Shown here piece after piece: positions 24,553-63,530 of a stretch of DNA of 64,000 nt. Every line of letters starts with the position of its first letter. Within the stretch, counting starts at the first letter, position 1. The DNA comes from Mytilus californianus (lineage: Eukaryota). The notes under the pieces are model-generated. The model searched no databases, was not told the DNA's origin, and saw nothing but the letters and a program-made list of their open reading frames with translations. Made by a program: the position numbers and the translations under genes. The stretch is from NCBI RefSeq assembly GCF_021869535.1, contig NW_026262734.1, positions 106,702,001 to 106,766,000 of the forward strand, written 5' to 3'.

Positions 24553-24596
24553 GCGTCACAGATGAAACATATTTAGACGAAACGCACGTCTTGCGT
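24553..24596 (+). ncRNA. Degenerate type I hammerhead relic (mirror at ~12234-12277 minus)
   Basis: GCGUCA-CAGAUGA-...-GAC-GAAA-CGCACG-UC-UUGCGU; core U mutated and stem II damaged. Confidence 0.4.
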
Positions 24597-25988
24597 ACAG
24601 AATTTTAATCCTGGTATCTTTGAATAGTTTATGTCTTTTAAATTTGTTCTTAAATCTATTTTCAGTGACAAAACGATTTACTTTTTACATTACAAATTCC
24701 GGCTTATATTGATTCGAGGTGTCCTAAATTATTTTACTGAAGGTAGGCGATTTTGGTACATTTTGTCATGGTTGACCAAATTCAATACAGTTCTACATAT
24801 GTTAAATATATATAAATACGTGTATATACAAGTCACATTGTACCTGAAGATCAATGAACGCAGTGAAAGCGCTAGTAAATGTAACGAACTGAATACGTTA
24901 ATATGTTTAATTTTAATATTAATTACAAGCAAACGCATTCTACTGAATTTTTCTTTATATGTAAAAATGTTCACAAATCTCTCACGACGACATTAATTGC
25001 ACATGTTAAACAAGTATCAATAAAATACCAAACTCTAAGGCAATTCAAAAAAGGGGTAGTCCATAAAAAAAATGACAAAATCATGCGTGAGCCTTTATCA
25101 ACTAACGGAACAAAAGGAAAACAACCGTCATATTCTTGACTTGTACAGGCATTTATCGAAGAAAATGGTGAGTAAAACCTGGTTTTATAGCAAGCTAAAA
25201 TTTCCACTTGTACGACAGTCGTTTATAGTACCGTTATATTGAAAAAAATGAGTGAGCAACCAAAATAGAATTATTCCTTTACATATGTAATCTGTTTAGA
25301 TGATCTGATGGACATTCCTCAAATAGATGAGTACTTCCAAAGTATTAATAAAATATATTCTACAAGTGAAACCTGTTTTTGATTATCTTTTAGTCCTCAT
25401 TCAAGCACTTTCAACACATCTTTGAAATAAATAGATAAATTATTGCAATAACAACAAAAACTAAATGATTTAATAAGATGTATTACATGTATAAACTAGA
25501 ATTTCACCTCACACCTTCAATCCGTAAATAGCGATTTTGTTAAAATGCTAGTTTCCATTATTACTTTGATAAAGTAAACGATGAAATCGACACATGTAGA
25601 TAGTGTCCGTTCCATCGAAAATCTTAATGAAAAAAAATTGTTTCTCAAACTTTAACTATTTTATGTTTTACAATCAAAAATTAGAAATTAAAAAACAACG
25701 TTTGAATCAATCAAACTGGCCTATTCATATACGCCACGTCCACAGAGTAGAATAAGTTATAAGTGTCGAACTTGACATGCTTGACAAAAAACAATAAACA
25801 AAATTGATAGAATTCACCTAATTTTTCTTATAATAGGTGTGTCTACCGGAAAGGAAATTATGTGTGGTAAAAAAAAGACGTCTGTGTATACTTCTTAGTA
25901 TACAATACAAAAATGAAGTTTCCAATTTGTAAGACAGAGGCTAGTTTATCTATTCTTGCAGCTACTTATAAAACCCATTTAGATGTTA

Positions 25989-27380: not shown

Positions 27381-27710
27381 TTAAAGCCAAATGTTTGATA
27401 CCCAAGGATGTATAAGAACCAAAACAGTTGAAGAGCTACATGACCAAAACGGGCCGTAAAATAAATGCCAAATCAATCTAAGGTCAACTTTGCCATATAG
27501 AGGGTTTTATGTATTCTGTTTTTAAAAAGATTCTACGAATGTATCAAATGTTTATAACTAATTGTGAAATATTCGTACCATAAGTTAATCATTAAATTAA
27601 TACTGTTCGAATTTTAGTCAACGAAACAGGGTTGTATTTGTATATTGTTCAAATGTGATTGTCGTGTTAAGAACATTATATAAAGTTGTTCAATATCTGT
27701 AATAATTGTC

Positions 27711-28088
27711 CTACTGTAAAAGGCCAATGTACATGTAGATGCCCATATCATATCATAGGGAGGGATCAATCGTACTTTTCAAAAACTCACTCTGTTTCAA
27801 ACAAAAAGTTCTCAGAAACTTACATTATCAAGATGCTTGATTTCTTGATTGACAACATATTTGTTACGTTTAGAGGACGGGTTTTTATAACAAACAACCG
27901 GCATTCCCAAGGGAACCAACTGTGCTCCTCTTCTTGCCAGCTTGTTCCTTTATTCATTTGAGGCTGACTTCATACAGGAGTTTCTTAGAAAGTAAGAAAA
28001 GAAGTTGACATTATCCTTTAACTTCACATTCCGCTATATAGATGATGTCCTTTCACTAAATAATTCAAAGTTTTGTGACTATGTTGAA
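27711..28088 (+). mobile_element. Naiad family 2 RT fragment left between two deletions
   Basis: IIKMLDFLIDNIFVTF...FRYIDDVLSLNN; matches 45854-46244. Confidence 0.85.
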
Positions 28089-30489
28089 ATAAATTTGTAA
28101 TGAGATTTTTCAAAAGATTTCCTTTAATTAAATATGAAAACTATTTTTGTGATAAGGTTGTGTGGAAGTGTAGTGTAGAGAGAAGAAAAATCATAACTTT
28201 CAACAGAATTAAATAGACCATCAAAGCACGTATTTTATCTAAAACCTCTAATGAATTTTTACACTCCATTTATTTTCATAAGCTTTATTACAAAAGTTAA
28301 TATCAAGTTCTTTGATAGTAGTAAAGGAGGTAGTTAGAAGCACTGACAGATTAGTAGTAGAACACTTACTAGATGCGGAGATGAAACGGAATTTAAATGG
28401 TTGTTTGTGTAATTTAGGTAACCAGTACATAGTCGGGACTTTCAAATGTTCGGAAGAGGCTTTAAGCTGGGTAGAGGCAGTGATATGCTTTGACTCTCTG
28501 TGGAGCGTAAGGACTTGAATGTAGACGAATTGATAATTTCGTTTTGGAGAACTACTGTGTAGTATATGCGTCACATCACCACTATATTATTGGCTGCTTT
28601 GTCTGCCGGTACGAACACAAACCGCTTTGCGAGTAGTTGCAGTTTATTTTTTATTCTAGAAATGGGTATATCATTGACCCTACTATTAATTTCAGAATTT
28701 TTTTAAAAATGAGATATACCAATATCAACAGTATTCATAATTTTTTTCAAATAACTGTCTAGAGATTTTTTATCAGTTTTTTCTCGTTTACACCAATTTT
28801 TACAGTAGGCAGACAAAGCGTCTTTAATGACCTGTTTCCAATCTATTATAGATGGAGGACGATATTAAGGTCCTTTCTTAAGAAAAGTTTTTACCTCACG
28901 GTCTTCGACGATGTTGAGGTCTCCTGTAATGACATGACTATAGAGAACATATCTAAAACTAGATGTTTCCCAGTCTCAAGTGGAAGGAGCATTATTTTCT
29001 ATATTGACGTCTGCTGTAACTGACGTATAATCAAAAAATAAACTTCTGCTGTTTTTTGTTATAAGAATACGAAATAATAGGTGGTTCTGTATTATCAAAA
29101 TATGGAGGTATTTGACTATGGATGGTAGAGTCATTTAATATACTAGATAAGTTAATAAAATTAATACCTCTATTTATATATTTTAATTTAAGAAAATGCC
29201 GTTTATGATTTTCAGGTTTGTCGATACTAGGAAACAGCCTGTGATGACAAAAGGCTGTAATAATATTGGTGTATTCATACAACAGGCTAAAAAATGAATT
29301 TTTATCACACTCCTGAAAAATAGTTTACATAATACTTGATGTCTACCATTATTTTTTAATATAGATAAAAGATCAGCAAGTGTATAATTTATACGATGAT
29401 TAATACGTTGATTACGGTTTTTGCGTTTACCATGAGACCTATTATTTCTTAGTCTTTTATCGGCAATATTAATAACATCGATAGAAGTTTTAGATATGTT
29501 CCCCTGTCCCAATATTTTGTCATTGAGACCGAGAGGATAAGCTGTTTGAAGTCTTTTTATCAAAAATAGTTCGCGAACTTCACGGGATTTTTCAAATTGC
29601 TTGTGTGATTGTCCTGGTTATTTCTGAACGGTTTCAAGTGGTTGGAATTTTATAAGTTTTAGATTATGATTATGCTTATCTAAATGTTCGGATATCAAAC
29701 TTTTGAATTTTTTAGGTCTTCGAAAGCGGTTAAGGTGCTCTCGATTTCTTCTGTAATATTCTCATTCCGTTTGTCTCACATATTGAATACCACACTTAGG
29801 CTGGGTTCAAGTTACCACATATATAAGGTTTTGACTTTTTCAGGTAATGTCACAGGAAAAGGAGAGTAAAAATGCTCTCCCGTTCACTATTGACCTAACA
29901 GTATTTTGTGAAGTTAATCTAAAACAGGTAAGTCATTTTTTGGCATTGCACGGGAAAATTTGTGGATATCCACGTTCATTTTTTGTTTAACAATCTGGCT
30001 GCAGAGGCATTACAAATACGTTTGTTTAAGCACGTGGATATCCTAGAAGTTGGGTTGTTATTTAATTTCTTTCCATTACGTAAAATCATGATAATTTAAA
30101 TAGGGGTATAGGCAAAAAAAAACCGGAGGATATAACATAGAATAAGGATCACACTTACGGAATAAGAAATAATAGGCAAAGCAGTAAAAGAACTCTTACA
30201 AAAACTGTTATAAAAAGCCCGACGTGAAGACTTAAGTGATACAAAACAGACATATAACAAACACAGGGCAAAAACAGAGATTGTAAGAAATCTAAGTAAA
30301 ACCATAGCAGGGGGCAATAATAAAAATAGTATTTATTTATTTATAGATGAGTATTTATAAATCCAAACACCATAATATTTAATTAACAATTAAGAACAAA
30401 TATATAATAAACATTTGAAAGCTCTCTCACAGGCAAATAACCCATAATTGTAAAATATAAGGGCATACACCACAAGCACGATAAGCTAT
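28089..30489 (-). mobile_element. Selenocysteine-type Naiad, 3'-truncated duplicate
   Basis: ATG 30089; TGA at 29935, 29842, 29809 and 28978 in Cys contexts; IKRLQTAYPLGLND, YWLPKLHK..FRFISASSKC, DFSTL; 3' part deleted. Confidence 0.88.
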
Positions 30490-35449: not shown

Positions 35450-36889
35450 TGTATTAAAGAGATATAGACTAAGTATACTGTCAGTGAACACACCTTTGAT
35501 AGTGACGAAGATCATAGAAAGTTATTTTATGTTGGTATTAAGATCAAAATATGAGTAAACTATAAGTCACAGCTATGAATTTAAGGATGGTCCGTTTAAA
35601 GTTGTTAATTACATTTTATGCAGGAAAGGCTGCAAAGGTTTTGCGTGGATTTATAGGCCAAATAAGACTAATATATCGGCAGTGCACATGGCCTTAGCTA
35701 GTTCTGAAAGTTCAAACAAAGTAGAGTAATCTTATCCTATCCTATTTTGTGGACAAATAACAAAAAATGACTTTCGAAAGTCAAAGAGAAATGAAATTTT
35801 GTCACTTCATTAACAAAGGTAGTAAAAAAGGTCTAATACAAAAACTCGTTAACCATAACACATTTTTCATATATCCTGATTCATGTTGATACATGTATAA
35901 GTTTGATAAAAAAAAATATATTTAATAAAAACGGATAAAGAGATAAGATGTCGGTTAAGACATTTTAATTCCTTTATTCATCCCCACATTCATTCGATAG
36001 TATTCAATAATAAATATTAGGAACCACTCCTAACAGTAAGAAAAGACGGCATGTTTATGCTTTCTTTGATATATATGTCGTAAACACCGCTATTTATTCA
36101 TTTGTTTTTAAATGATTTTTGGGGAATTAGTTACAGACATATAAAGGTGCACTCGATATATCGTAAAGTAATAGAGTTTTTTGTATTCTTATTGAAAGTA
36201 TGAGTGCTACAGCACCAACAAAACTGATAGTCACATAGTTATTAACATGTACATTTTTTTTTAAAAATACATGCCCATAATAGATAGAAACAAATAGGAA
36301 ATAAAAACAGAAGAAAATTTAAAAAACATGCCATAAAAGCTCAACGAAAACAATAAACAAGAAAAGAAAACGAATTATATTTATACTAATATTTGTACGA
36401 TAATATAACATACATAAAAAAAATAAGAAAGGCCATGAAAACAAAACAAACCAAAAAAAAAAAACAATACATTACATAACATCATTTTCAAGTGGACTGT
36501 TTTTTTTCAAATATTTATTTCAATATTTCCCTTTATTTATCTTCTTGCCAATTTGTCTAGAAAATACATCAGTAATAATCATTTAAAGTAAAGAAGTGAC
36601 CATTTGGATATTAGAGGTTTGGGGCAACAAAGTTATCTCGGATCCGAGGATGTTTTTTTCTAATTAAAAACCGATTTTTTCCTAGAGGCCTTCACTCCTA
36701 GATTTGATTTACCTCTTTTTATTTGCGCAGGACTTTTAACCTTTGATTTGAGCCTAGATAATATTTTTGTGTAAAAGACATTTCTAACGGAAGTGCACAG
36801 CCGATAGTCCAAAATTATTGAATAAATGTATGCTCCCTCTTTTCTCGTTACGGCAAGTTACGTCAAGTAAAGTCGATTTTCGTCCGTTC

Positions 36890-37160
36890 GTAAGATGTTG
36901 AGATACCTCTACTACGACGAATATGTTCCAATCGTCGTAACCAATCCCGTCCTCATTTTCCTCGAATGTGACCTAGCAAATTAGACTTTTCACCGGGGTT
37001 TTACTTTCTGAGCAACACGACGGGTGGTATATGTGGAGCAGGATCTGTTTTCCCATCCGTAGCATATCAAATCTCCCCTAGTTTTGTTTTAAAAGGGTTC
37101 GTGCTGCTCTTGCTTTAGTTTAAACTGTTGTTCTCTTTACTTTTTCCTATTTTGTAATGT
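36890..37160 (+). mobile_element. Naiad family 2-type 3' tail (paralog ~58790-59030)
   Basis: tgtgacctagcaaattagact...gagcaacacgacgggtgg...gggttcgtgctgctc. Confidence 0.7.
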
Positions 37161-37349
37161 TTTTGTTGTTTATACCGGTAACAGTCTTCAGTCTATCCTC
37201 TGTCATGAAAATTATCTATTTTAGATTTTAGATGTCGGGCAGGTTGATGGATAAAACCATTGATTTTACGTTCGTTGCGTTGCTCAATTCCTAGTCAGCT
37301 GTACAATTTTATTATAATGAGACATTTATTTTATTTCCCTAGGAATGAA

Positions 37350-37810
37350 TCTTTTGGCACAATTGGACAACTTCACAATAAAATCTATGACAAACGGGAA
37401 GATTTCAACTTCCCAATTATCAATTTCCAATTTCTCAGCAGTAACATACCCTCTGCACCATCGTATGGTGTTTATATATCTCAGTTGATGAGTTATGCTC
37501 ATGCATGTTCACGCTATACGGACTTCATATACAGGAGTGTGCTCCTTACGCAGAAACTGCTCCAACAGAATTATGAGGGGGCAAGATTAAAAATGACACG
37601 CCGAATATTTTATGGACACCATCACAAATTGGTTGATCTATATAATGTGTCTGTGTCTAAACTAACTATCGACATTTTTACCACGTCTTAGATTGTGGTT
37701 TACCATCTACGTCGTCTAGTCTGTTCAGTACCGAACGTGACCTATTTCCGAATATGACTGTTTTTGTCGAGTGTGAATTCGCATTGCTATTAAACGTGTC
37801 TCGGTATTTA
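37350..37810 (+). mobile_element. Naiad RT C-terminal fragment (paralog 59240-59700)
   Basis: IYDKREDFNFPIINFQFLSSNIPSAPSYGVYISQL...FYGHHHKLV. Confidence 0.85.
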
Positions 37811-38420
37811 TACATCCAACATTCATGTATTTAGTTATGATGTGTCTTTTTTAAGTATGGTTGGATATTGTGTTATGTCTTATCGTTTGTGATTTGAATT
37901 CTATTTTTATTTTCTATATGTATGTAAAAGTTCAGATAATTAATCAGCTAGTTCATTTATATGATTTTTAGTTTAAAGCAACTATATCACAGGATTTATT
38001 TGTTTTTACACAGTTTTGATTTAGAAGAAAAACCTACATGGTTAGAAAGTACAAATAATTACACCATTACTAACACAATTTTATATTAATATTCTTGTAA
38101 TGGTTAGAAAATACATAAAATTACACCATTACAAACTTAATCCCAATTGTATATACTATTTTTTTTAAATTTACCTGTGATGTCACTTTTTGTGGCGTTG
38201 ATACATTCGTGTGACGGACAGTTCATAATTATATTGTGATGTACTGGTGTACTGTCGTACATTAATGGGAGGTATCCGTTGTTCTTCTGTGGTTTACATG
38301 TTATAATGTACTATTATGTTATTTATTTATTTATGTGTTTCTCTGTTTTGAGTGTTTTTGTGTTTATTTGTCCTGTATTCCTGTCACGTAATGTTGTAAT
38401 TTTAACGGTATTTCTAACAT

Positions 38421-38512
38421 TGCCATATAATCGGGAGGTTTGGCTAGCCATAAAACCAGGTTAACCCGCCATTTTTTCTTAAAATGTCCTGTACCAAGTC
38501 AGGAATATGGCA
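38421..38512 (+). ncRNA. Type-P5 twister-like fold (paralog 60308-60400)
   Basis: P5 UGCCAUAU/AUAUGGCA; GAGGU with loop ACC; palindrome UGGCUAGCCA; P3 AUUUU/AAAAU; P4 CCUG-UACCAAGU-CAGG. Confidence 0.65.
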
Positions 38513-40000
38513 GTTGTTATCAAATAGTCTGTTTCTATGTATGTTGGCGTTTGTTTTTGTAGCAGTTCAGTGTTTCTGTTGTTCCGTTGTTTTCCTCTTA
38601 TAGTTAATGTGTTTCCCTCGGTTTTGGTTAGTGACCCGGATTAGTTTTCGCTTAATCGATTTATGACTATTGAACAGCGGTATACTGCTGTTGCCTTTAT
38701 TTGGTTCTTACCATTTGATATTATTTAAAGTAAGATATTAATAAAAGATGTGATGATTGTGCAAATGCGACCTAGTTTGTTCAAAAATTTTAGGACTACT
38801 TGTATGTCATCCCAATATAGACATATTCAATCGTTCAAGGTTGAAAACCTTAGTTATGGTGTTGCTGACAATATGGTATGGGTTTTGCTAATTGTTGAAG
38901 GTTGTATATAGTTGTTTACTTCTACGTCATTTGGAGAACTATTGCATTGACAGTCGTACCACATCCTTATATTTTCATATACATGTATACATCTTTCATG
39001 TTATTGATTATATGTAAGTGTTTCTGATGGTGAAATTTTAAACATGTTTTCCTCCCTGCCAAAATTTAAAAAAAAGAATAAAAGTTTATTTTCATCGTTC
39101 TGAAATTCAAGTCCGTATCTGTAGGATTGTCCACTTAAAAGCTGAAGTAACTTAAATATAAAAATTTACAAATAATTATTGTCCAATAAGACAAGAGAGA
39201 TAACTCAAATTATTACTATAATCAAATAAGTACATTATTCTATGCGTCGAAAAAAATTTAAAAAAATGTATTTGCAGATAAACATATAAATAGGAAATAG
39301 TTTATCAAACATAAAACTTATATGAAAAAGACATAACTACGCATAGAAAAAGAATCATATAGTTGATGTTAAATACAGTGTGTTTTTTGCAATGCAAAGC
39401 TTCTATCTGAATTGAATGTCAGCGAAATGTCGAAAAAAATTAAAAGCAAATTTTTGAGAAAAAAATTAAGATTAAATATAGCGTTAGCATACCAACGTCA
39501 GATAAACGTTGTGTCAAAGAACAACCAGGCAATAGTGATCATCGATTTTTAACACAATGTATAAACATGGTTACCATCTCCTGCTTTGGACCCCATGATG
39601 TTTGTCTGTGTCTATACGTCATTTTCACGGAGAAGATGGATGCAGGTGGTTTTTGTTATCTTTTGTACTTACAAATATTTGGGTGATTTCTTTTTATCCT
39701 TTGTATGTTGAATTTTGTATGAAACATTTTATATTCCGCCGAATATCAGAAAACCTTAGCAATAACTTTGATTTTAATTTAAATAAACCATTATGTGCAT
39801 CAAACTGATATTCAAATATTTCTTTTATATTTTAGTATTTATAGTATAGCTATTATTATTGTTTTAGTTTTTCCATCTATTGCGATCATTAATGTGTGTC
39901 ATAGTCTATGCATATATTTATTGTTAATAAATGCGCTTCCTATTATGTCTGTTTGGGTTGCTCACCTTTACCCCCCAATATAACGGAACTACAAACAACA

Positions 40001-40091
40001 GTCATACAAAAGGGAGGTATAACTAGCTATTTACCTAGGTAAGACCCACCATTTTCTTCGCAAAATGCCTGTACCAAGTCAGGAATATGAC
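40001..40091 (+). ncRNA. Type-P5 twister-like fold (degenerate paralog 61881-61977)
   Basis: P5 GUCAUA/UAUGAC; GAGGU; P3 CAUUUU/AAAAUG; P4 CCUG-UACCAAGU-CAGG. Confidence 0.55.
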
Positions 40092-41571
40092 AGTTGTTTT
40101 TCACTAGTTCCATTGATTGAGCGCGTTTGATTTTGTCAGTTTTTAGGGACTTCCCTTTTTTTGAAGTTGCCTTGAATATCAGTATTTTTGTTACATTTTT
40201 TTACGTCAAAATTTGCTTTTAAAATAATTGAATCAATATATTAGAAATAACATTATTATTGACCTTGAACAGTTTTGACATTGTTAAGGTAAATACAGAA
40301 ACATATCAAATCGGAAGTTACATATAGTCTTTCTGAATTGAACAACAATTTGTGTCTGCATGTTATTGAATCCTGACCGATAGAAACCGATTAAAAATAA
40401 AGTCATTACAGTTTTCATTATGACCAAAAAAGTAAAGCTTAAACCCATAGCAAAAGAGAAAATGATGATTCAAGAATATGATACACAATTCACAATTAAC
40501 CACAACACTTAAACCTGTATCTGCCCCTGCAACATTGATCGGAAATATCTACTTATCGGAATCGCTTATATGGCTAAATTTGTTACTATTTGTATCACAC
40601 TTTAAACGGCACATTATCTACTTAATTCATATAAACTTTTGTGGTAAATGAGTCCTAGATAAATAGAAGTGTCAAGGCTGATTAATGTGTAAATGCTATA
40701 TTTTCATTGATTTGTTCTATATATTTCGTCATACTAACTCCCTTGTCACCAGTTAGTTTTACATGACGTAAATAATAAACTTCATTCTGATTAAAAATTT
40801 GGTGTGAATAATAAGTCAAACCTATTTCCGTTGTACGATGTTTGCTTTTGTAGGTATGATTGTGTTTAATTGTTTAAGTCATTCCCCATTCTTTTTTTAA
40901 CAAGATATATAGTTGTAACTTATTAAGGCCTGTAAGATCAACCCACAGTTATTGCTTTTCCTTACAACTATTAGATATAAAAACAATTGTGTTATTCTTA
41001 ATCTTCTTTTAAAAAAAATAAAGGAAATTATACAATTTCAGTTTAGTGTGTTCTATCCTCAATTGTTTTTCAAATGTAAAAAAAAGTTTTTACAGTTCAT
41101 ACGCACTATTTGCTCCATTTATAATTTCTTCACATTATACATGTATATGATAATTATCTCCACGCAGTTCATGGTTCTAAGTGTTTCAGTATTTTACAAT
41201 GAGATTTTGATGCAAGTTTCGAAAATGAAAATTTGTTACGTTTTTTTTTTGCCAGTAAAAATATGTGATTTGTTGATTTTACACTGTATCGTGTACATTA
41301 CGTCGCATCATACTCTTCTATCTCGATGCATTACTATGGCCCTTCTTGAAATTAGCTGTTATGCATAATGTTTGACATCGTGTTTAAGGCTTTGCGACTA
41401 AGAACAACATTTTCTTTCCCGTTTCGTTACCTTTAGGTTTTTGGGTTTTTCTCGAATGCAACAATTATGTATTTTTTATGCATTAGTGTAAACCCCTTTT
41501 TCTTTCAATAGAAAATTACAGAAAGAAACAAAACAACAGCAAATAAAATAACAAGCTTCAATATTTTCTTT

Positions 41572-41658
41572 GTAGAGGTATAGGGGGAGGGTTGAGATCT
41601 CATAAACATGTTTAACCCCGCCGCATTTTTGCGCCTGTCCCAAGTCAGGAGCCTCTAT
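41572..41658 (+). ncRNA. Type-P5 twister ribozyme candidate (most complete copy)
   Basis: P5 GUAGAGGU/GCCUCUAU; P2 GGGG/CCCC; GAGGG; U|AA at 41613/41614; GC; P3 GCA-UUUU-UGC; P4 CCUG-UCCCAAGU-CAGG; T1 CCC/GGG. Confidence 0.75.
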
Positions 41659-41900
41659 CCTTTGTCAGTCTTGTATTATTTTTAATTTTAGTTTCTTGTG
41701 TACAATTTGGAGTTTAGTATGGCGTTCATTATCACTGAACTAGTATATATATTTGTTTAGGGGCCAGCTGAAGGACGCCTCCGGGTGCGGGAATTTCTCG
41801 CTGTATTGAAGACCTGTTGGTGACCTTCTGCTGTTGTCTGTTCTATGGTCGGGTTGTTGTCTCTTTGACACATTCCCCATTTCCATTCACAATTTTATTT
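41572..41900 (+). mobile_element. ~330-bp retroposon-like repeat at the unit 1/unit 2 junction
   Basis: Not present in unit 2 at 63440; its last 75 bp recur as an insertion at 57819-57893. Confidence 0.75.
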
Positions 41901-44549: not shown

Positions 44550-46910
44550 ATCATGGATTAACATTGTTTTCCAGCATTTTAATCAGTCTGATCATTCGAT
44601 CCTTTCCATGCAAGTTCGTATCATCGAAAAAGTATTCCCCAGGACTAACAATCCTCATCTTGCAACACCTCTCCGTAGACAAATGGAAGACTACTGGATT
44701 TGGGAACTATGAACTGCGACATCATATGGTTGCAATTACAAAATTGAGGGTATAGGTATTCTATCTAGTCAATCCAATAGCTCGAAGAATGTGACGACTA
44801 TGTTCACCGCTACTTTTTAACGTAGATGCAGTCATGGTTATCGTCTTACTACATCACCTACTCTCCATGATGTCTCTATAAATGACCTGCTGCCACTAAA
44901 ACAAGGGGTATCCATCATATTCGCACGAAGCTTAATTCACTAGCCCTTTCAAATCTTCATTCTATGTACAACATATGTTTAGAAACGAGTTACAAACCCC
45001 CATTAAAACCAATACAAACTTACAGCTATCATCTCGGATATTGCCAGTCACAGACTTTTAAAACCAGTTCGCATTTAAAAGGATGAAAATGAGAAAAGAT
45101 CCTTTCCTTTGCCAACCAAGGTTACGGTGCCATCAACTTGGGCAATATCCTTCATCATAAATCAGTTCACTCGAAAATACCTCCCTATTGTAAAAATCAG
45201 TCTGTACCTATCATCTCTCATACCTATACCAAACTGATTGCAACTTAAATTTTCACTTACAAACACGTGTTGTAGGATCTCAATATTGACGACTTCAAGT
45301 CTAAACCTCCTGATTGCACATGTGCTAGTTCCCGATTCATATATAATTCGAATGGCCACGTTATTACTGACGACCTTAACATTGTCAATAACACTTCTCT
45401 GCGAAATGTGTTATCCAAAGGCCCGAAATATCGTGAGCCTAAATACATCAATTGAAAACACAAAATACTGATGGATTCAGTCGAGGATTTTGCCTGGCAA
45501 CGGATTAAACGCGAGAAAGAAAACATAGATACTCTTTCCTGAATGAATTAAGACTGTGAGGTCGTTGATACAAATCAGAATTAAAAAACCTGGATGATTC
45601 TATGAATAAACATGCTACATCAATCATTAAAGACCAAAATGTTGCAAAAGACCTGTCCTACCTCCATGACAAATATGTTGTTGGCGTTAATCAGATGTAG
45701 ATACTAAAAAATTCCAAAGATCCTATAAAGTACATACAATCTAAGACTATTTCATCTTACAATAGTACTAAACATTTGACTTTTTAACACTCTACACATG
45801 TATTCCTCATTCCAAACATACAAAAACAAAAAAACAAGTTGAACAAATTGGTCCTGCTGTGAAAGGCCAATGTACATGTATATGCACATATCATATCATA
45901 GGGGGGGGGGGGGGGGGGTGATAAATTGTACTTTGTAAAAACTCACTCTGTTTCAAACAAAAAGTTCTCAGAAACCTACATTATCAAGATGATTGATTTC
46001 TTGATTGACAACATATTTGTTACGTTTAGAGGACGGGTTTGTATAACAAACAACCGGCATTCCCAAGGGAACCAACTGTGCTCCTCTTCTTGTCGGCTTG
46101 TTCCTTTATTTATTTGAGGCTGACTTCATACAGGAGTTTCTTAGAAAGTAAGAAAAGAAGTTGGCATTATCCTTTAACTTCACATTCCGCTATATAGATG
46201 ATGTCCTTTCACTAAATAATTCAAAGTTTTGTGACTATGTTGAACGCATCTATCCCATCGACTTTGAGTCTGCCTTATATCTTGACTTACATCTAGGACT
46301 TGAAAATAAGGGTCGTTTGAAAATGAAATTTTACGACGAAAGAGATGGTTTTAGGAACTTTCTATTTGTATGAAGCAACATTTCAACAGCGTTTGCGAAT
46401 GGAGTAGACTTCTCCCAGCTACTACGATATTCCAGGGCTCATATTTCCTATCAAGATTTCCTTAAGAGAGGGTTGCTGCTCACAAGGAAGCTATATAGCC
46501 AAGAGTGTTCCAAGTGATGCAGACGAAACATTCCTTCGTAAATTTTACGGACGCAATCACGAGATGGTTGACTGTTCCACTGATGACGACTTATAGTTCC
46601 AATTGTCGTAACTACAATCCCGTCCTCTTTTACCCGGATGTGACCTACCAAATTGGACTTATAACCAAGTGTGTACTACATGAGCATCACGACAGTTGAA
46701 ACATGTGGAGCAGCATCTGTTTACCCTTCCGGAGTACCTGTGATTACCCCTAATTTTTGGTGGGGTTCGTGTTGCTCGATCTTTAGTTTTCCATGTTGTG
46801 TTTTATTTACTATTGATTGTCTTTTGGTCTTTTTATTTTTAGCCATAGTGTTGTCAGTTCATTTTCGACGTAAGAGTTTGAATGTCCTTTTGGTATCTTT
46901 CGTCTCTCTC
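44550..46910 (+). mobile_element. Degraded Naiad family 2 (Cys type)
   Basis: FQHFNQSDHSILSMQVRIIEK...YWI...SYGCNYKIEG; PPDCTCASS; KGPKYRE; FLIDNIFVTF; FRYIDDVLSLNN; 3' tail. Confidence 0.88.
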
Positions 46911-47769
46911 TTTGGAAAATTCGTATGTTACTAAAGTTGCTTGTTAAAGCTTTGTTGTAAAAACAGAGGTTCTACATTTTATTTATATCCTTGTACATAT
47001 ACGATGGTCACTATTAAACACGTTAAATGTGTAATAATTACATTACATGTATTTTCATTACAATCCATAATTTTGATGGGCTTACAACAATCGCGAGGCA
47101 CTTCCATATCAAATTGTATTTTCGTATGAAATACAACAGCAATGACTGCACGTGCTATTCGTGACAGTGTTAAAAATAATTCATTGAAAAACAAACGAAG
47201 ACTTGGTACAACTTTTATTTTATAATTCTAGTATCAAAATGTAATTATAAGAATTGAATGCTTCTTTTTGAAATGTTAAAGGGGTTGTATAAGCGTTGAT
47301 CGTGTGCACAGTTTTAACATGAAGCGGTTTCTCATACAAAATGTGCTTCGGTCAACGCTTTTACACCTAAATAAAATCATAAATAAAAAGCATTCAATTC
47401 TTAAATGAATTCTTCGCACTAACGGATTTTAATGTGATATATAACAAGGTTACTAGTAATCTACGACAGCATTTTATTTTGGCATCAATTGAGGGTATGC
47501 ACTATGTATATAGATATAAGAAGATGTGGTATGAGTGCCAATGAGACAACTCTCCATCCAAGTCACAATTTGTAAAAGTAAACCATTATAAGTCAAAGTA
47601 CGGCCTTCAACACGGAGCCTTGGCTCACACCGAACAGCAAGCTATAAAGGTCCCCAAAAATGACTAGTGTAAAACCATTTAAACAGGAAAACCAACGGTC
47701 TAATCTATATAAAAAACGAGAAACGAGATACACTTATAAACCACATCAACAAACGACAACCACTAAACA

Positions 47770-47851
47770 TCAGGTTCCTGACTTAGGACAGGTGCAAACA
47801 AATGCAGCGGGTTTAAACGTTTTAATAGGCGTCAACCTTCACCCTACCTGA
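47770..47851 (-). ncRNA. Type-P5 twister ribozyme candidate in the Sec-Naiad tail
   Basis: P5 UCAGGU/ACCUGA; P2 GGGU/ACCC; GAAGG; U|AA at 47815/47814; GCU; P3 GCA/UGC; P4 CCUG-UCCUAAGU-CAGG; T1 CCU/AGG. Confidence 0.75.
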
Positions 47852-48188
47852 AACAATAGTGTAACATCACAACATAGAAAGACACACTATAAAATATCAA
47901 TTGAAATGGCTTAACTCGATCAAAAGACATCTTAACAAAAACAAGTGAACATACACTGAACGAAAGCGAAAATTTATCGTCATACTAAACACTTATCAAA
48001 GGTGCTATATATTAAAAAAAAGTGAGACTAGATATATCACTGAATAAGTAAACATTAAATAACAAAAATACATTACAAATTGTATCAACAGGTCAAATTA
48101 ACACAAAAGTACGATTTGAGAGTACTCGCAGTTACTGAAAGCTAGTTAAAAGCCAAAAACAATTAGTAATAAAAAATCATGCATCAGA

Positions 48189-48246
48189 GACTAAAATCAG
48201 TTAAAACACATCCCAGGGATTTAGTGTTTTAACGTCATGATCAGTC
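48189..48246 (-). promoter_or_regulatory. SECIS element (form II)
   Basis: GACUGAUC-AUGA-C-GUUAAAACAC-U-AAA-UCC-CUG-GGA-U-GUGUUUUAAC-U-GA-UUUU-AGUC: AUGA/GA quartet, perfect 10-bp helix II, unpaired AAA, apical mini-stem, helix I GACU/AGUC. Confidence 0.85.
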
Positions 48247-50666
48247 AAAGAAGACGAGTTGGGATATATAAACATCGTGTAATGGAACCAAAGGAACATC
48301 GCCGTCTAAAAAGGGATTATTAACAATAGGGAATGAAAAATCGTCTCTTTTGTCGTGAATTTTAGTATGGAGTTTCCCTTTAAAAATTGAAATGTCTAAA
48401 TCTAGATAAGGACAACTACTGCTGTTTATGTTAGATTTATTTAAAGTAAGTTCCTTTGGGTAAATTTCGCTAGTATATTTAGAGAACTCTGGATTATTTA
48501 ACGAAAAAGTATCATCAAGATAACAGTAGGTATTGTTGAATTATCAACCAAATGTAACAATGCCGTGTCTTTACTGAGTTTGGTCATAAACTGAGATTCA
48601 TAGCAATACAGGAATAAATCTGTTATTAAAGGAGCACAGTTAGTGCCCATATGAATACCTACTACCTGTCGATACACTTTATCGCCGAAACGTACATATG
48701 TGTTGTCCAGGAGAAAATTTAAAGCTTCAATCATATCTTCACATTTCCAGTAAGTGCATCTAGCATACTTTCCTTTTTCGTTACAGAAAAAGGCTTTAAA
48801 GGAGTTACAGCAAATAAATTTGCTATGAGATTTTTCAAAAGACCATTTAATTAAATATGAAAACTTTTTTGTGATAGGATTGTGTGGAAGTGTAGTGTAG
48901 AGAGTAGAAAAATCATAACTGTCAACAGAATTAAAAGGACCATCAAAAGCACGTATTTTATCTAAAACCTCTAATGAATTTTTAACACTCCAAAAATAAA
49001 TAATACCATTATTTTCATAAGCTTTATTACAAAAGTTAATAACAAGTTCTTTGATAGCAGTAAAGGAGGTAGTTAGAAGCACTGACAGATTAGCAGTAGA
49101 ACACTTAGTAGATGCGGAGATGAAACGGAATTTTAACGGAGGCTTTCAGCTGGGAAGTGACAGTGATATGCTTGTTTACAATTTGACTCTCTGTGGAGCG
49201 TACGGACTTGAATGTAGACGAATTGATAATTTCGTTTTGGAGAACTACCGTGTAGTATATGCGTCACACCACCACTATATTATTGGCTGCTTTGTTAATG
49301 ACCTGACGACACTGTTTCCAATCTATTATAGATGGAGGACGATATTAAGGTCCTTTCTTAAGAAAAGTTTTTACCTCACGGTCTTCGACGATGTTGAGGT
49401 CTCCTGTAATGACATGACCACGGTCTCAAGTGGAAGGAGCATTATTTTCTATATTGACGTCTGCTGTAACTGACGTATAATTAAAAATCAAACTTCTGCT
49501 GGTTTTTTTTTATAAGAATACGAAATAATAGTTGGTTCGGTATTATCAAAATATGGAGGTATTTGACTATGGATGGTAGAGTCATTGAATATACTAGATA
49601 AGTTAATAAAATCAATACCTCTATTTATATATTTTAATTTAAGAAAATGCCGTTTATGATTTTCAGGTTTATCGATACTAGGAAACAGCCTATGATGACA
49701 AAAGGCTGTAACAATACGGGTGTATTCATACAACGGGCTAAAAAATGAATTTTTATCACACACCTGAAAAATAGTTTACATAATACTTGATGTCTACCAT
49801 TATTTTTTAATATAGATAAAAGATCAGCAAGTGTATAATTTATACGATGTTTAATGAGTTGATTACAGTTTTTGCGTTTACCATGAGACCTATTATTTCT
49901 TAGTCGTTTATCGACAATATTAATCATCGATAGAAGTTTTAGATATGTTCCCCTGTCCCAATATTTTGTCATTGAGACCGAGAGGATAAGCTGTTTGAAG
50001 TCTTTTTATCCAAAATAGTTCGCGAACTTCACGGGATTTTTCAAATTGCGTGTGTTATTGTCCTGATTGTTTCTGAACGGTTTCAAGTGGTTGGAGTTTT
50101 ATAAATTTTAGATTATGATCATGCTTATCTAAATGTTGGTATATCAAACTTTTGAATTTTTTAGGTCTTCGAAAGCGGTAAAGGTGCTCTCAATTCTTCT
50201 GTAATATTCTCATCCCGTCTGTCCCACATATTGAATACCACACTTAGGCTGGGTTCAAGTTACCACATATATAAGGTTTTGAGTTTTTTCAGGTAATGTC
50301 ACAGGGAAAGGAGAGTGAAAAAGCTCTCCCGTTCAATGTTGACCTAACAGTATTTTGTGAAGTAAATCTAAAACAGGTGAGTCATTTTTTGGCATTGCAC
50401 GGGAAAATTTGTGGATATCCACGTGCATTTTTGTTTAACAATCTGCCTGCAGAGGCATTACAAATACGTTTGTTTAAGCACGTGGATATCCTAGAAGTCT
50501 GGTTGTTATTTAATTTCTTTCCATTACGTAAAATCATGATAATTTAAATAGGGGTATAGGCAAAATAAAAAAAAGACCGGAGGTTATAACATAGAATAAG
50601 GATCACACTTACGGAATAAGAAATAATAGGCAAAGCAGAAAAAGAACTCTTACAAAAACTGTTATA

Positions 50667-57111: not shown

Positions 57112-57818
57112 TGTATTAAAGAGATATAGACTAAGTATACTGTCAGTGAACACACCTTTGATAGTGACGAAGATCATAGAAAGTTATTTTATGTTGGTAT
57201 TAAGATCAAAATATGAGTAAACTATAAGTCACAGCTATGAATTCAAGGATGGTCCGTTTAAAGTTATTAATTACATTTTATGCAGGAATGGCTGCAAAGG
57301 TTTTGCGTGGATTTATAGGCCAAATAAGACTAATATATCAGCAGTGCACATGGCCTTAGCTAGTTCTAAAAGTTCAAACAAAATAGAGTAATCTTATCCT
57401 ATTCTATTTTGTGGACAAATAACAAAAAATGTCTTTTGAAAGTCACAGAGAAATGAAATTTTGTCACTTCATTAACAAAGGTAGTAAAAAAGGTCTAATA
57501 CAAAAACTCGTTAACCATAACACATTTTTCATATATCCTGATTCATGTTGATACATGTATAAGTGTAAAGCAAATTTGATAAAAAAAAAATTATATTTAA
57601 TAAAAACGTATAAAGAGATAAGATGTCGGTTAAGACATTTTAATTCCTTTATTCATCCACACATTCATTCGATAGTATTCAATAATAAATATTAGGAACC
57701 ACTCCTAACAGTAAGAAAAGACGGCATGTTTATGCTTTCTTTGATATATATGTCGTAAACACCGCTATTTATTCATTTGTTTTTAAATGATTTTTTGGGA
57801 ATTATTTACAGACATATA

Positions 57819-57893
57819 GACCTTCTGCTGTTGTCTGTTCTATGGTCGGGTTGTTGTCTCTTTGACACATTCCCCATTTCCATTCTCAATTTT
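57819..57893 (+). mobile_element. 75-bp 5'-truncated retro-insertion with ATATA target duplication
   Basis: Matches the 3' end of 41572-41900; empty site acagacATATAaagg at ~36132-36146. Confidence 0.8.
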
Positions 57894-60800
57894 ATATAAA
57901 GGTGCACTCGATATATCGTAACGTAATAGAGTTTTTTGTATTCTTATTGAAAGTATGAGTGCTACAGCACCAACAAAACTGATAGTCACATAGTTATTAA
58001 CATGTACATTTGTTTTTTAAAATACATGCCTAAAATAGATAGAAACAAATAGGAAATAAAAACAGAAGAAAATTTAAAAAAATTGTCATAAAAGCTCAAC
58101 GAAAACAATAAACAAGAAAACAAAACGAATTATATTTATACTAATATGTGTAAGATAATATAACATACAAAAAAAGAATAAGAAAGGCCATGAAAACAAA
58201 ACAAACAAAAAAAAACAAAAAACAAAAAAACAATACATTACATAACATCATTTTTCAAGTAGACTGTTTTTTTTTTAAATATTTATTTCAATATTTCCCT
58301 TTATTTATCTTCTTGCCAATTTGTCTAGAAAATACATCAGTATTAATCATTTAAAGTAAAGAAGTGACCATTTGGATTTTAGAGGTTTGGGGCAACAAAG
58401 TTATCTCGGATCCGAGAATGTTTTTTTCTAATTAAAAACCGTTTTTTCCTAGAGGCCTTCACTCCTAGATTTGATTTACCTCTTTTTATTTGCGCAGGAC
58501 TTTTAACCTTTGATCTGAGCCTAGATAAGTTTTCAAAAAGAGTCATTGCCCCTCCCATCCCAACAAAAAAAAAGACACTAAGTACAGATCTGAGAGTACT
58601 CGCAATCAATATAATATGTCTACAACTCAAAATGGTTTAAAAGAACCCTGCATGTATATTTTTGTGTAAAAGACATTTCTAACGGAAGTACACAGCCGAT
58701 AGTCCAAAATTATTGAATAAATGAATGCTCCCTCTTTTCTCGTTACGGCATGTTACGTCAAGTAATGGCGATTTTCGTCAGTTCGTAAGATGTTGAGATA
58801 CCTCTACTACGACGAATATGTTCCAATCGTCGTAACCAATCCCGTCCTCATTTTCCTCGAATGTGACCTAGCAAATTAGACTTTTCACCGGGGTTTTACT
58901 TCTGAGCAACACGACGGGTGGCATATGTGGAGCAGGATCTGTTTTCCCATCCGTAGCATATCAAATCTAGTTTTGTTTTAAAAGGGCTCGTGCTGCTCTT
59001 GCTTTAGTTTAAACTGTTGTTCTCTATAGTTTTTCCTATTTTGTAATGTTTTCGTTGTTTATACCGGTAACAGTCTTTAGTCTATCCTCTGTCATGAAAA
59101 TTATCTATTTTAGATTTTAGATGTCGGGCAGGTTGATGGATAAAACCATTGATTTTACGTTCGTTGCGTTGCCCAATTCCTAATCTGCTGTACAATTTTA
59201 TTATAATGAGACATTTATTATATTTCCCTAGGAATGAATCTTTTGGCACAATTGGACAACTTCACAATAAAATCTATGACAAACGGGAAGATTTCAACTT
59301 CCCAATTATCAATTTCCAATTTCTCAGCAGTAACATACCCTCTGCACCATCGTATGGTGTTTATATATCTCAGTTGATGAGTTATGCTCATGCATGTTTA
59401 CACTATACGGACTTCATATACAGGAGTGTGCTCCTTACGCAGAAACTGCTCCAACAGAGTTATGAGGAGGCAAGATTAAAAATGACACGCCGAACATTTT
59501 ATGGACACCATCACAAATTGGTTGATCTATACAATGTGTCTGTGTCTAAACTAACTATAGACATTTTTACCACGTCTTAGCTTGTGGTTTACCATCGACG
59601 TCGTCTAGTCTGCTCAGTACTGAATGTGACCTATTCCCGAATATGACTATTTTTGTCGAGTGTGAATTCGCATTGCTATTAAACGTGTCTCGGTATTTAT
59701 ACATCCAACATTCATGTATTTAGTTATGATGTGTCTTTTTTAAGTATGGTTGGATATTGTGTTATGTCTTATCGTTTGTGATTTGAATTATATTTTTATT
59801 TTCTATATGTATGTAAAAGTTCAGATAATTAATCAGCTAGTTCATTTATATGATTTTTAGTTTAAAGCAACTATATGCACAGGATTTATTTGTTTTTACA
59901 CAGTTTTGATTTAGAAGAAAAAAACCTACATGGTTAGAAAGTACAAATAATTACACCATTACTAACACAATTTCATATTAATATTCTTGTAATGGTTAGA
60001 AAATACATAAAATTACACCATTACAAACTTAATCCCAATTGTATATACTATTTTTTTAAATTTACCTGTGGTGTCACTTTTTGTGGCGTTGATACATTTG
60101 TGTGACGGACAGTTCGTAATTCTATTGTGGTGTACTGGTGTACTGTCGTACATTAATGGGAGGTATCCGTTGTTCTTCTGTGGTTTACATGTTATAATGT
60201 ACTTTTATGTTATTTATTAATGTATTTCTCTGTTTTGAGTGTTCTTGCGTTTATTTGTACTGTATTCCTGTCATGTAATGTTGTCATTTTAACGGTATTT
60301 CTAGCATTGTCATATAATCGGGAGGTTTGGCTAGCCATAAAACCAGGTTCAACCCACCATTTTTTCTTAAAATGTCCTGTACCAAGTCAGGAATATGGCA
60401 GTTGTTATCAAATAGTCTGTTTCTATGTATGTTGGCGTTTGTTTTTATAGCAGTTCAGTGTTTCTGTTGTTCCGTTGTTTTCCTCTTATAGTTAATGTGT
60501 TTCCCTCGGTTTTGGTTAGTGACCCGGATTAGTTTTCGCTTAATCGATTTATGACTATTAAACAGCGGTATACTACTGTTGCCTTTATTTGGTGCTTACC
60601 ATTTGATGTTATTTAAAGTTAGATATTAGTAAAAGATGTGATGACTGTGCCAATGTGACATAGTTTGTTCAAAAATTTTAGGACTACTTGTATGTCATCC
60701 CAATATAGACCCATTCAATCGTTCGAGGTTGAAAACCTTAGTTATGGTGTTGCTGACAATATGGTATGGGTTTTGCTAATTGTTGAAGGTTGTATATAGT

Positions 60801-63530
60801 TGTTTACTTCTACGTCATTTGGATATATTGCATTGACAGTCGCACCACATCCTTATATTTTCATATACATGTATACATCTTTCATGTTATTCATTATATG
60901 TAAGTGTTTCTGATGGTGAAATTTTAAACATGTTTTCCTCCCTGCCAAAATTTAAAAAAAAGAATAAAAGTTTATTTTCATCGCTTTGAAATTCAAGTCC
61001 GTATTTGTAAGATTGTCCACTTAAAAGCTGAAGTAACTTAAATATAAAAGTTTACAAATAATTATTGTCCAATAAGACAAGAGAGATAACCCAGATTATT
61101 ACTATAATCAAATCATTACATTATTCTATGCGTGGAAAAAAGAAAAAAAAATGTATTTGCAGATAAACATATAAATAGTAAATAGTTTATCAAACATAAA
61201 ACTTATATGAAAAAGACATAACTACGCATAGAAAATGAATCATATAGTTGATGTTAAATACAGTGTGTTTTTGCAATGCAAAGCTTCTATCTGAATTGAA
61301 TGTGAGCGAAATGTCGAAAAAAATTAATAGCAAATTTTTGAGAAAAACATTCAGATTAAATATAGCGTTAGCATACCAACGTCAGATAAACATTGTGTCA
61401 AAGAACAACCAGGCAATAGTGATCATCGATTTTTAACACAATGTATAAACATGGTTACCATCTCCTGCTTTGGACCCCATGTTGTGTGTCTCTGTCTATA
61501 CGTCATTTCACGGAGAAGATGGATGCAGGTGGTTTTTGTTATCTTTTGTACTTACAAATATTTGGGTGATTCCTTTTTATCCTTTGTATGTTGAATTTTG
61601 TATGAAGCATTTTATATTCCGCCGAATATCAGAAAACCTTAGCAATAACTTTGATTTTAATGTAAATAAACCATTATGTGCATCAAACTGATATTCAAAT
61701 ATTTTTTTATATTTTAGTATTTATAGTATAGCTATTATTATTGTTTTATTTTTTCAATCTATTGCGATCATTAATGTGTGTCATAGTATATGCATATATT
61801 TATTGTTAATAAATGCGCTTCCTACTATGTCTGTTTTGGGTTGCTCACCTTTACCCCCCAATATAACGGAACTACAAACAACTGTCATACAAAAGGGAGG
61901 TATAACTAGCTATTTACCTAGGTAAGACCCACCATTTTCTTCGCAAAATGCCTGTAACAAATCAGGAATATGACAGTCGTTTTTCACTAGTCCCGTTGAT
62001 TGAGAGCGTTTGATTTTGTCAGTTTTTAGGGACTTCCCCGTTTTTGAATTTGCCTTGGATATCAGTATTTTTGTTATACTTTTTTTACGTCAAAATTTGC
62101 TTTTAAAATAATTGAACCAATATATTTTAAATAACATTATTATTGACCTTGAACAGTTTTGACATTGTTAAGGTAGATACAGAAACATATCAAACCGGAA
62201 GTTACATCTGGTCTTTCTAAATTGAACAAAAATTTGTGTCTGCATGTTATTGAATCCTGACCAATAGAAACCGATTAAAAATAAAGTCATTACAGTTTTC
62301 ATTATGACCAAATAAGTAAAGCTTAAACCCATAGCAAAAGAGAAAATGATGATTCAAGAATATGATACACAATTCACAATTAACCACAACACTAAAACCT
62401 GTATCTGTCCCTGCAACATTGATCGGAAATATCTAGTTATCGGAATCGCTCATATAGCTAAATTTGTTACTATTTGTATCACACTTTAAACGGCACATTA
62501 TCTACTTAATTCATATAAACTTTTGTGGTAAATGTCCTAGATAAATAGAAGTGTCAAGGCTGATTAATGTGTAAATGCTACATTTTCATTGATTTGTTCT
62601 ATATGTTTCGTCATACTAACTCCCTTGTCACCAGTTAGTTTTACATAACGTAAATAGTAAACTTCATTCTGATTAAAATTTTGGTGTGAATAAGAGTCAA
62701 ACCTATTTCCGTTGTACGATGTTTGCTTTTGTAGGTATGATTGTGTTTAATTGTTTAAGTTATTCCCCATTCTTTTTTTTAACAAGATATATAGTTGGAA
62801 CTTATTAAGGTCTGTAAGATCAACCCACAGATTGCTTTTCCTTATAACTATTAGATATAAAAACAATTGTGTTATTCTTAATCTTCTTTTAAAAAAAATC
62901 AAGGAAATTATACAATTTCAGTTTAGTGTGTTCTATCCTCAACTGTTTTTCAAATGTAAAAAAAATTTTTTACAGTTCATACGAACTATTTGCTCCATTT
63001 ATAATTTCTTCACATTATACATGTATATGATAATTATCTCCACGCAGTTCATGGTTTTAAGTGTTTCAGTATTTTACAATGAGATTTTGATGCAAGTTTC
63101 GAAAATGAAAATTTGTTACGTTTTATTTTGCCAGTAAAAATATGTAATTTGTTGATATTACACTGTATCGTGTACATTACGTCGCACCTAACTCTTATGC
63201 ATTACTGTGGCCCTTCTTGAAATTTGCTGTTATGCATAATGTTTGACGTCGTGTTTAAGGCTTTGCGACTAAGAACTACATTTTCTTTCCCGTTCCGTTA
63301 CCTTTATGTTTTTGGATCTTTCTCGAATGCAACAATTATGTATTTCTATGCATTAGTGTAAACACTTTTTTCTTTCAGTAGAAAATTACAGAAAGAAACA
63401 AAACAACAGCAAATAAAATAACAAGCTTCAATATTTTCTTTCTTTGTGGTATGGGTTTTTATCATTGTTGAATGCTTCTAAATGACCTATAGTTTCTAAC
63501 ATCTAGGTAATATTGTTTCTGGTATAATTG

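Follow-up and report, generated by a model that had tools for sequence, protein, structure and literature searches.

Type-P5 twister motifs downstream of the reverse transcriptase in Naiad Penelope-like elements of Mytilus californianus

In many invertebrate genomes, Naiads outnumber every other kind of Penelope-like element. To our knowledge, most twister ribozymes still lack an assigned role. The twister class, type P5 included, is said to have been described by Roth et al. in 2014. Type-P5 twisters are already known (PMC10085705), and in Schistosoma mansoni the Perere-3/RTE non-LTR retrotransposons bear twister variants at their 5' end (PMC8501958, PMC7761336). A 2024 survey placed bivalves among the twister-bearing taxa, tested only type-P1 motifs and left transposons unmentioned (PMC11662667). 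Canonical Penelope-like elements carry hammerhead ribozymes in their pseudo-LTRs (Cervera and de la Pena 2014; Lunse et al. 2017, via PMC6765202). Naiads have been published as lacking canonical hammerheads, as an initial annotation of the DNA studied here had also stated, and this lack was read as a hint that ribozymes could be passengers that the elements can do without (PMC8557442). The clam selenoprotein Naiads of Craig et al. 2021 were reported with no ribozyme, in a text without any mention of twister (PMC8557442). The initial annotation knew of no description of twisters in Naiads; our search of the literature outside subscription journals likewise found no paper combining "twister" and "Naiad".

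Here, we analysed a window of 64,000 nucleotides of M. californianus DNA (the window is the whole stretch of DNA that was analysed) and found that 47770-47851 (-) and 41572-41658 (+) are, by their sequence, type-P5 twister motifs with every conserved core nucleotide. A covariance model built here from 25 copies and run without filters (R1) revealed eight well-formed copies in the window, scoring 54-89 bits, plus three decayed ones (25134-25210, 11619-11695 and 1656-1731).

47770-47851, minus strand: E-family type-P5 twister (R1 76.2 bits, match span 47776-47847; nested-only MFE folding recovers P5, P2, P3 and P4)
41572-41658, plus strand: D-family type-P5 twister (R1 89.1 bits, match span 41580-41650; also matched by Rfam Twister-P5)
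21398-21497, plus strand: A-family twister, ACC-type (R1 63.2 bits, match span 21407-21487; T1 ACC/GGU, 2-bp P2 UC/GA)
15279-15378, minus strand: A-family twister (A2), inverted duplicate of 21398-21497 (R1 63.9 bits, match span 15289-15369)
38421-38512, plus strand: B-family twister, ACC-type (R1 63.2 bits, match span 38428-38504)
60308-60400, plus strand: B-family twister (B2), segmental-duplication copy (R1 61.8 bits, match span 60315-60392)
40001-40091, plus strand: C-family twister-like copy, ACC-type (R1 60.7 bits, match span 40007-40084; UAA changed to UAAGA)
61884-61974, plus strand: C-family copy in the duplicated segment (R1 54.2 bits, match span 61890-61967; loop further mutated, UAACAAAU)
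25134-25210, minus strand: degenerate twister-derived copy, core lost (GUGGAAAUU, 1-base loop deletion; R1 38.9 bits)
11619-11695, plus strand: degenerate twister-derived copy, inverted duplicate of 25134-25210 (R1 27.9 bits)
1656-1731, minus strand: weak decayed E-family relative with recognisable 3' half and downstream tail (R1 16.8 bits)

The E copy reads, on the minus strand, UCAGGU-A-GGGU-GA-AGG-(20 nt)-U/AA-ACCC-GC-UGCA(UUUGUU)UGCA-CCUG-U-CCU-AA-GU-CAGG-A-ACCUGA, with the slash at the predicted cut. These segments are, in order, the 5' strand of P5, the 3' strand of P2, the G-A dinucleotide, the 3' strand of pseudoknot T1, a spacer at the P1 position, the predicted scissile U-A step, a second A, the 5' strand of P2, the T2 strand, the P3 hairpin, P4 with a loop bearing the other T1 and T2 strands, a single A and the 3' strand of P5. 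Its parts, and those of the D copy, are as follows.

47851-47846 with 47775-47770, minus strand: P5 of the E copy
47844-47841 with 47812-47809, minus strand: P2 of the E copy
47840-47839, minus strand: G-A dinucleotide of the E copy (predicted general-base G at 47840)
47838-47836 with 47787-47785, minus strand: T1 of the E copy
U47815 and A47814, minus strand: predicted scissile bond of the E copy (predicted general-acid A at 47814)
47808-47807 with 47782-47781, minus strand: T2 of the E copy
47806-47803 with 47796-47793, minus strand: P3 of the E copy
47792-47789 with 47780-47777, minus strand: P4 of the E copy
41583-41586 with 41616-41619, plus strand: P2 of the D copy
41587-41588, plus strand: G-A dinucleotide of the D copy
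41589-41591 with 41639-41641, plus strand: T1 of the D copy
U41613 and A41614, plus strand: predicted scissile bond of the D copy

This arrangement is that of the type-P5 twister (RF02684), which has the same order (P2-3', G-A, T1, optional P1, U-AA, P2-5', T2, optional P3, P4 with the loop U-NNN-AAG-Y, and P5) and the same conserved nucleotides; both pseudoknots can form in the window motifs. The window motifs differ in lacking a canonical P1 (an 8-12 nt palindrome and a linker of ~10 nt stand in its place), in a loop that ends in U (AAGU) and thereby gives G-U or A-U in T2, in always having a P3 hairpin, in a 2-bp P2 in one lineage and in scores below the Rfam gathering threshold. The conserved core (N-1 followed by A-A, G-A after the 3' strand of P2, and U-NNN-A-A-G-Y in loop 4) is kept in D, E, A and B, in three loci outside the window (L008, L037 and L002; such loci carry L numbers) and in 20 further loci, the exceptions being decayed copies (C, 25134-25210 and 11619-11695). 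The closing stem P5 is long, at 6-13 bp or more. The P4-loop pattern CCTGTNNNAAGTCAGG, with up to 2 mismatches, has 12 matches in the window versus 0.86 expected (0 of 100 shuffles reach 12), and 9 of the 12 are twister-like. All five loci on which the initial annotation rested (D, E and the first A, B and C copies listed) have the layout that it gave them, with two corrections. Their tails had been called unrelated; however, A, B and C align with one another, as do D and E, and these tails are thus homologous. The UAA of the layout is UAAGA in both C copies (40001-40091 and 61884-61974), which are therefore probably inactive.

Rfam models gave partial support. In the D region (41560-41670, 111 nt), Twister-P5 was the sole credible match (23.1 bits, E 0.0028, full model), with GAGGG, UAA, GC and UCCCAAG aligned, the P3 hairpin treated as an insertion and P1 skipped. 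Twister-P5 was also the sole credible family for L021, a younger E-family member (21.8 bits, E 0.0056), and the core strings aligned across the two are GAGGG/GAAGG, UAA, GC and UCCNAAG. Since both scores lie under the gathering score of RF02684 (37.6), neither sequence is formally a member of that family. The check with this model that had been recommended at the outset thus yielded D as one credible, subthreshold match, but the E copy itself gave no Rfam match at E<=10 and the B copy no match either (111 nt scanned in each case), both scans returning only junk. At gathering score, a scan of the whole window found no twister and SECIS alone, and a scan of 20 loci returned nothing, the type-P1 twisters L003 and L006 included. 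Permissive scans of 30 kb and 3.4 kb missed all twister copies owing to speed filters, and a scan of viral contigs gave no match. The Rfam model ignores pseudoknots and penalises the P3 insert, the missing P1 and compensated T1 variants (i.e., it penalises the very compensated changes that back the fold).

The stronger evidence for a twister fold in these sequences is comparative, beyond the Rfam scores. We aligned 25 distinct copies with MAFFT; 91.3% of the cells are paired, a level that 0 of 500 shuffles attain (they give 83.9%), and sliding the partners lowers it to 29-45%. These statistics rest on related sequences, so that the shuffles overstate independence. T1 is 98.7% paired and takes all three forms given in the initial annotation (CCC/GGG, CCU/AGG and ACC/GGU), two of its three pairs changing on both sides (GC/AU and GC/UA). 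T2 is 98% paired, alternating between G-U and A-U; all three pairs of P3 are compensatory, and P2 has AU, UA and GU variants. The early statement that every stem covaries is accurate for P2, P3, P5, T1 and T2 but not for P4, which is invariant within the window and covaries in the distant relative L002 (AUCG/CGAU, three compensatory pairs relative to CCUG/CAGG). P5 differs in sequence among at least 12 families, and its flank-to-flank duplex averages -14.7 kcal/mol, versus -6.9 in shuffled and -7.3 in cross-family controls (-16.4 kcal/mol in the A copy at 21398-21497). Unguided RNAalifold on 13 canonical sequences predicted exactly P2, P3 and P4; on the mixed 25-sequence alignment it predicted P4 alone, since P2 and P3 do not line up in the ACC-type rows. 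MFE folds of single sequences recovered P5, P2, P3 and P4; consensus-like copies had z-scores from -2.4 to -3.1. The type-P5 identity proposed initially is thus upheld by the Rfam matches of D and L021, by covariation, by P5 energies and by unguided folding.

A scan of metagenome contigs with the 3' half of the motif alone (UAA, CCRC, a gap, and P4 with its loop), a pattern that leaves the 3' strand of T1 outside, provided a further test. It yielded 29 retroelement-type loci, 21 of which have the unsearched 5' half in register with a T1 strand matching the loop. The same scan retrieved the textbook type-P1 twisters L003 and L006, both of which use AAGU, demonstrating that the half-pattern is twister-specific. 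The distant relative L002, whose RT identity is only 54-59%, was missed by the half-pattern and found by R1. A chance likeness of a repeat to the twister consensus would accord with Rfam scores under the gathering threshold and with large-window scans that miss the motif, but not with covariation of pseudoknots and helices, with P5 energies far beyond controls, with a 5' half predicted in loci chosen by their 3' half alone or with the retrieval of textbook type-P1 twisters by one and the same pattern. Covariation and the half-motif test effectively refute chance likeness, to which we give almost no credence.

An ACC-type lineage comprises families A, B and C plus L008 and L037; it has the loop UACCAAGU, T1 ACC/GGU and the string GG-G-A-GGU or GA-G-A-GGU. 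P2 had initially been given as ACCC/GGGU or CCCC/GGGG, which is right for E and D but not for A, B and C, where P2 has 2 bp. All members fit a P2 of 2 bp with the G-A dinucleotide after it, and this arrangement is compensated twice (CC/GG to UC/GA, in A versus B and C and in L037 versus L008), which suggests that the catalytic G is probably retained beside a very short P2. A 3-bp P2 without the catalytic G was rejected, as A and L037 would then have a C.A mismatch. High-throughput assays found that cleavage is independent of P2 length, that the N-1 position tolerates any base and that wobbles and helix imperfections are tolerated in tested twisters (PMC11662667). The B copy at 38421-38512 reads UUAACCCGCC; relative to it, sequencing reads have an insertion after 38462 and G>A at 38468, and the family consensus from reads is UUCAACCCACC, giving C at N-1.

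We next turn to the elements that carry these motifs. Co-oriented RT remnants lie 390-740 nt upstream of the A, A2, B, B2 and E twisters, and ten twister-selected loci have an RT 130-900 nt upstream.

20121-21011, plus strand: RT upstream of the A twister (~390 nt), co-oriented
15766-16656, minus strand: RT upstream of the A2 twister
37365-37685, co-oriented with the B twister: RT C-terminus upstream of it
48247-49245, minus strand: remains of the E element's Naiad RT (85-90% identity to the L007 RT)
48189-48246, minus strand: SECIS of the E element, between ORF and twister (Rfam SECIS_1 37 bits, gathering score 35)
47505-50666, minus strand: whole E element (by blastn, colinear with L007 354-4506, with three internal deletions)
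41572-41898, plus strand: 5'-truncated D-family element copy (from the repeat depth profile and loose ends; twister 285 nt upstream of the 3' end)

The E element is 85-88% identical to L007 at the DNA level and has the order ORF, SECIS, twister and a tail of ~310 nt ending near 47505. Decayed Naiad ORF remnants at 48247-50666 (-) directly precede its SECIS at 48189-48246. The 3' end of the D element (41898) is fixed by an independent 77-nt copy at 57819-57895. The element order is 5' UTR, ORF (GIY-YIG EN, CxC, RT), SECIS, twister and a 3' tail of ~285-310 nt. Naiads are diagnosed by an N-terminal GIY-YIG, a KR-rich block, CxC, GxKF/Y, and DKA rather than DKG before the RT (PMC8557442). The long ORFs of L007 and L025 have an N-terminal GIY-YIG-like motif, a KR-rich block, CxC, GPKY, DKA and in-frame UGA, the latter at CxC and after DKAANN. 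In L025 the motifs are GIQYVGETG, RKNRSHGRRKNRNQRK, CNC, GPKY and VPADKAANN; L007 has the same motifs, but with U-D-C in place of CxC. On these published diagnostics, both classify as Naiads. Pfam searches of the RT pieces and the intact Naiad ORFs gave no RT or GIY-YIG match. The clam selenoprotein Naiads (Craig et al. 2021, PMC8557442) share GIY-YIG, the KR-rich block, CxC, GxKY and DKA, and also in-frame UGA at Cys positions, a SECIS after the ORF, TA-rich targets, 5' truncation and inverted copies. The 77-nt copy is inserted in the TA-rich site ACATATA/AAGG and A and A2 are inverted copies, in the insertion style of Naiads. We classify the twister-bearing elements of the window, from the motifs of these relatives and the SECIS of the E element, as selenoprotein-encoding Naiads of a mollusc. 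The original placement of the motif in a 3' tail, co-oriented with a Naiad RT, is borne out by the RT remnants upstream and by the Naiad features of the relatives L007 and L025.

The type of twister tracks the divergence of the RT. Relative to the L007 RT, identity is 85-100% for elements with CCU twisters (99% in L021), 62-77% for CCC, 54-59% for UCC and 30-47% for ACC. Twister module and RT have therefore diverged in step, and the module is no recent hitch-hiker. If the twisters were separate small, non-autonomous, retrozyme-like elements inserted in or next to Naiad tails, one would expect what is indeed seen in most genomic copies, which are short, RT-less and present in very high numbers, and also in the clustering of different co-oriented twister families (B, C and D in the window; L002, L009, L033 and L036); the idea that hammerheads may merely parasitise Penelope-like elements has been raised before (PMC8557442). 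However, the 5' truncation usual in these elements accounts for the short copies, the motif keeps a constant place between ORF/SECIS and 3' end in full-length L007, L025, L001 and the window E element, and its subtype follows the RT. We regard such separate hitch-hikers as highly improbable and a module inherited with the Naiads as the better account.

One Naiad RT family in the window (6790-7675 (-), 27683-28091 (+) and 45683-46572 (+)) has no twister detectable within ~900 nt downstream, so the association is broad and universality is not implied. The initial claim that twisters replace hammerheads in these Naiads is a functional reading of this association, and it does not reach this family. 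The antisense coding sequence CCTGTATGAAGTCAGC of the same family mimics the P4-loop pattern; its three copies were considered as twister loops and rejected, as they are antisense RT coding sequence.

Two rearrangements involve the elements. A segmental duplication (36001-41571 and 57676-63441, ~96% identity) ends exactly at the start of the D element, and its second copy carries the 77-nt 5'-truncated D-family tail at 57819-57895. A large inverted duplication (~11619-16656 and 20121-25210, centred near 18.4 kb) mirrors A and A2, the degenerate copies and RT fragments, an arrangement described for Penelope-like insertions.

Helix P1, which adjoins the cleavage site, is absent from these motifs, and the spacer in its place has a monomer MFE of only 0 to -1.8 kcal/mol. 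P1 is reported to be dispensable for activity in tested twisters (PMC11662667). The spacer opens with a perfect palindrome of 8-12 nt, followed by a conserved linker of ~10 nt, A-Y-AAAC-N-GUU, whose AAAC-N-GUU block abuts the predicted cleavage site. Palindromic spacers occur in the window at 41592-41612 and 47816-47835 (-), and in L002, L007, L014, L021, L008 and L022. The palindrome centres vary yet stay self-complementary (GAGAUCUC, GGGAUCCC, GGCUAGCC and GGCGCGCC), and palindromes with GGAUCC, GGGCCC and GGUACC all occur within one 99%-identical family. Homodimers of the palindromes have energies of -13 to -20 kcal/mol, versus only about -7.5 kcal/mol for cross-subfamily pairs. L002 has two divergent tandem twisters (L002:5628-5705 and L002:6520-6596) 892 nt apart, downstream of one RT and with P4 AUCG/CGAU and U.U in T1; their perfect palindromes differ (AUGGCCAU versus AGGCGCCU).

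Such symmetry would be needless in a hairpin loop. We infer that the palindromes may serve to pair one RNA with another, a situation reminiscent of the minimal hammerheads of Penelope-like elements, which depend on dimers. Those hammerheads and the Naiad motifs share a small self-cleaving ribozyme (predicted for Naiads) in a terminal repeat or 3' region, a shortened helix with a palindrome (dimer-dependent cleavage in the hammerheads) and tandem, 5'-truncated insertions. They differ in ribozyme class and fold, in the host clade (Naiads have an N-terminal endonuclease) and in dimer dependence, which for the Naiad motifs we infer only by analogy. The Schistosoma Perere-3/RTE twisters likewise provide a twister-class ribozyme co-transcribed with a retrotransposon. 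They are truncated, type-P1-like and at the 5' end, with P1 completed by the target site and a role in 5'-end processing; in contrast, the Naiad motif is a complete type-P5 in the 3' UTR, ~300 nt from the 3' end. We tentatively entertain a more specific possibility, that across a deep Naiad subclade twisters are a functional substitute for the hammerhead that acts only as RNA pairs, with the palindrome as a subfamily-specific pairing code, such that only matched or tandem RNAs would be cut to unit-length, possibly circular, templates. If this were true, ribozyme processing would be a class-wide requirement of Penelope-like retrotransposition, whatever the fold.

We consider it likely that the motifs are genuine type-P5 twister-class self-cleaving ribozyme motifs, inherited as a fixed 3' UTR module of a large Naiad subclade. 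The cut would separate N-1 (U or C) from the first A of AA (U47815-A47814 and U41613-A41614), and, as in studied twisters, the G of G-A would act as general base and the first A as general acid. Where transcripts read through or run in tandem (pseudo-LTR), cutting twice in succession would free an RNA of unit length whose ends are 5'-OH and 2',3'-cyclic phosphate, a model already proposed for the hammerheads of canonical Penelope-like elements (PMC6765202). The released RNA would still bear ORF and SECIS, since the order ORF, SECIS, twister lets the coding part keep its SECIS after a cut. In a single genomic copy, a cut would part the ORF from its 3' tail, and any benefit would thus depend on tandem or read-through transcripts, a kind typical of such elements. 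A tandem arrangement is seen in L007, where positions 1-62 are the 3' end of another copy lying upstream, and in L002 with its two twisters. The palindromes may let two RNAs pair, as minimal hammerheads of Penelope-like elements do.

In an RNA-seq run of the same species (X21), we found no read-end pile-up, and contigs aligned to the stretch likewise had no ends at the predicted sites; of the reads, which covered both strands, 92% mapped to the stretch only in part. The absence of a read-end signal at the predicted sites in this run, whose reads mapped poorly, would also be expected of a twister-derived fold that does not cleave and persists in the 3' UTR as a module for structure or dimerisation (e.g., for RT recognition in target-primed reverse transcription or as an RNA-RNA pairing signal). 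A fold of this kind would accord with the replacement of P1 by palindromes that are poor as monomers and strong as homodimers, with the 2-bp P2 of the ACC-type, with the U.U in T1 of L002 and with a possible G-to-A change at the general base of L013. A purely structural role needs no catalytic nucleotides, yet all of those in the catalytic core (AA, G-A and the loop-4 AAG) are kept although the RTs have diverged to 30-47% identity, and tested twisters tolerate such imperfections (PMC11662667). We therefore think a non-cleaving module unlikely and favour a self-cleaving one.

A conserved twister at the equivalent place argues against the view of ribozymes as dispensable passengers, and two unrelated folds at one position in sister clades would strongly favour a part for self-cleavage in the Penelope-like replication cycle. 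These data suggest that the whole Penelope-like class needs some self-cleaving RNA, of whichever kind. Twisters would gain a second role in retroelements, after the 5' variants of non-LTR elements, and the known forms are joined by a natural variant that lacks P1, bears a palindrome and may be cleaved when two RNAs pair. The motif also offers a compact RNA marker for annotating Naiad tails, which are the commonest dispersed repeats in the M. californianus genome.

Two minor observations concern other sequences. Host-type Naiad tails with twisters occur in two assemblies labelled as bacteria (L036 and L037; a SUP05 isolate and the Bathymodiolus platifrons methanotrophic gill symbiont), where they are most likely host DNA contamination. 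A near-perfect 90-nt hairpin at 34891-34980 matches mir-2329 on both strands (46 bits, gathering score 90) and is probably an inverted-repeat transposon rather than a microRNA.
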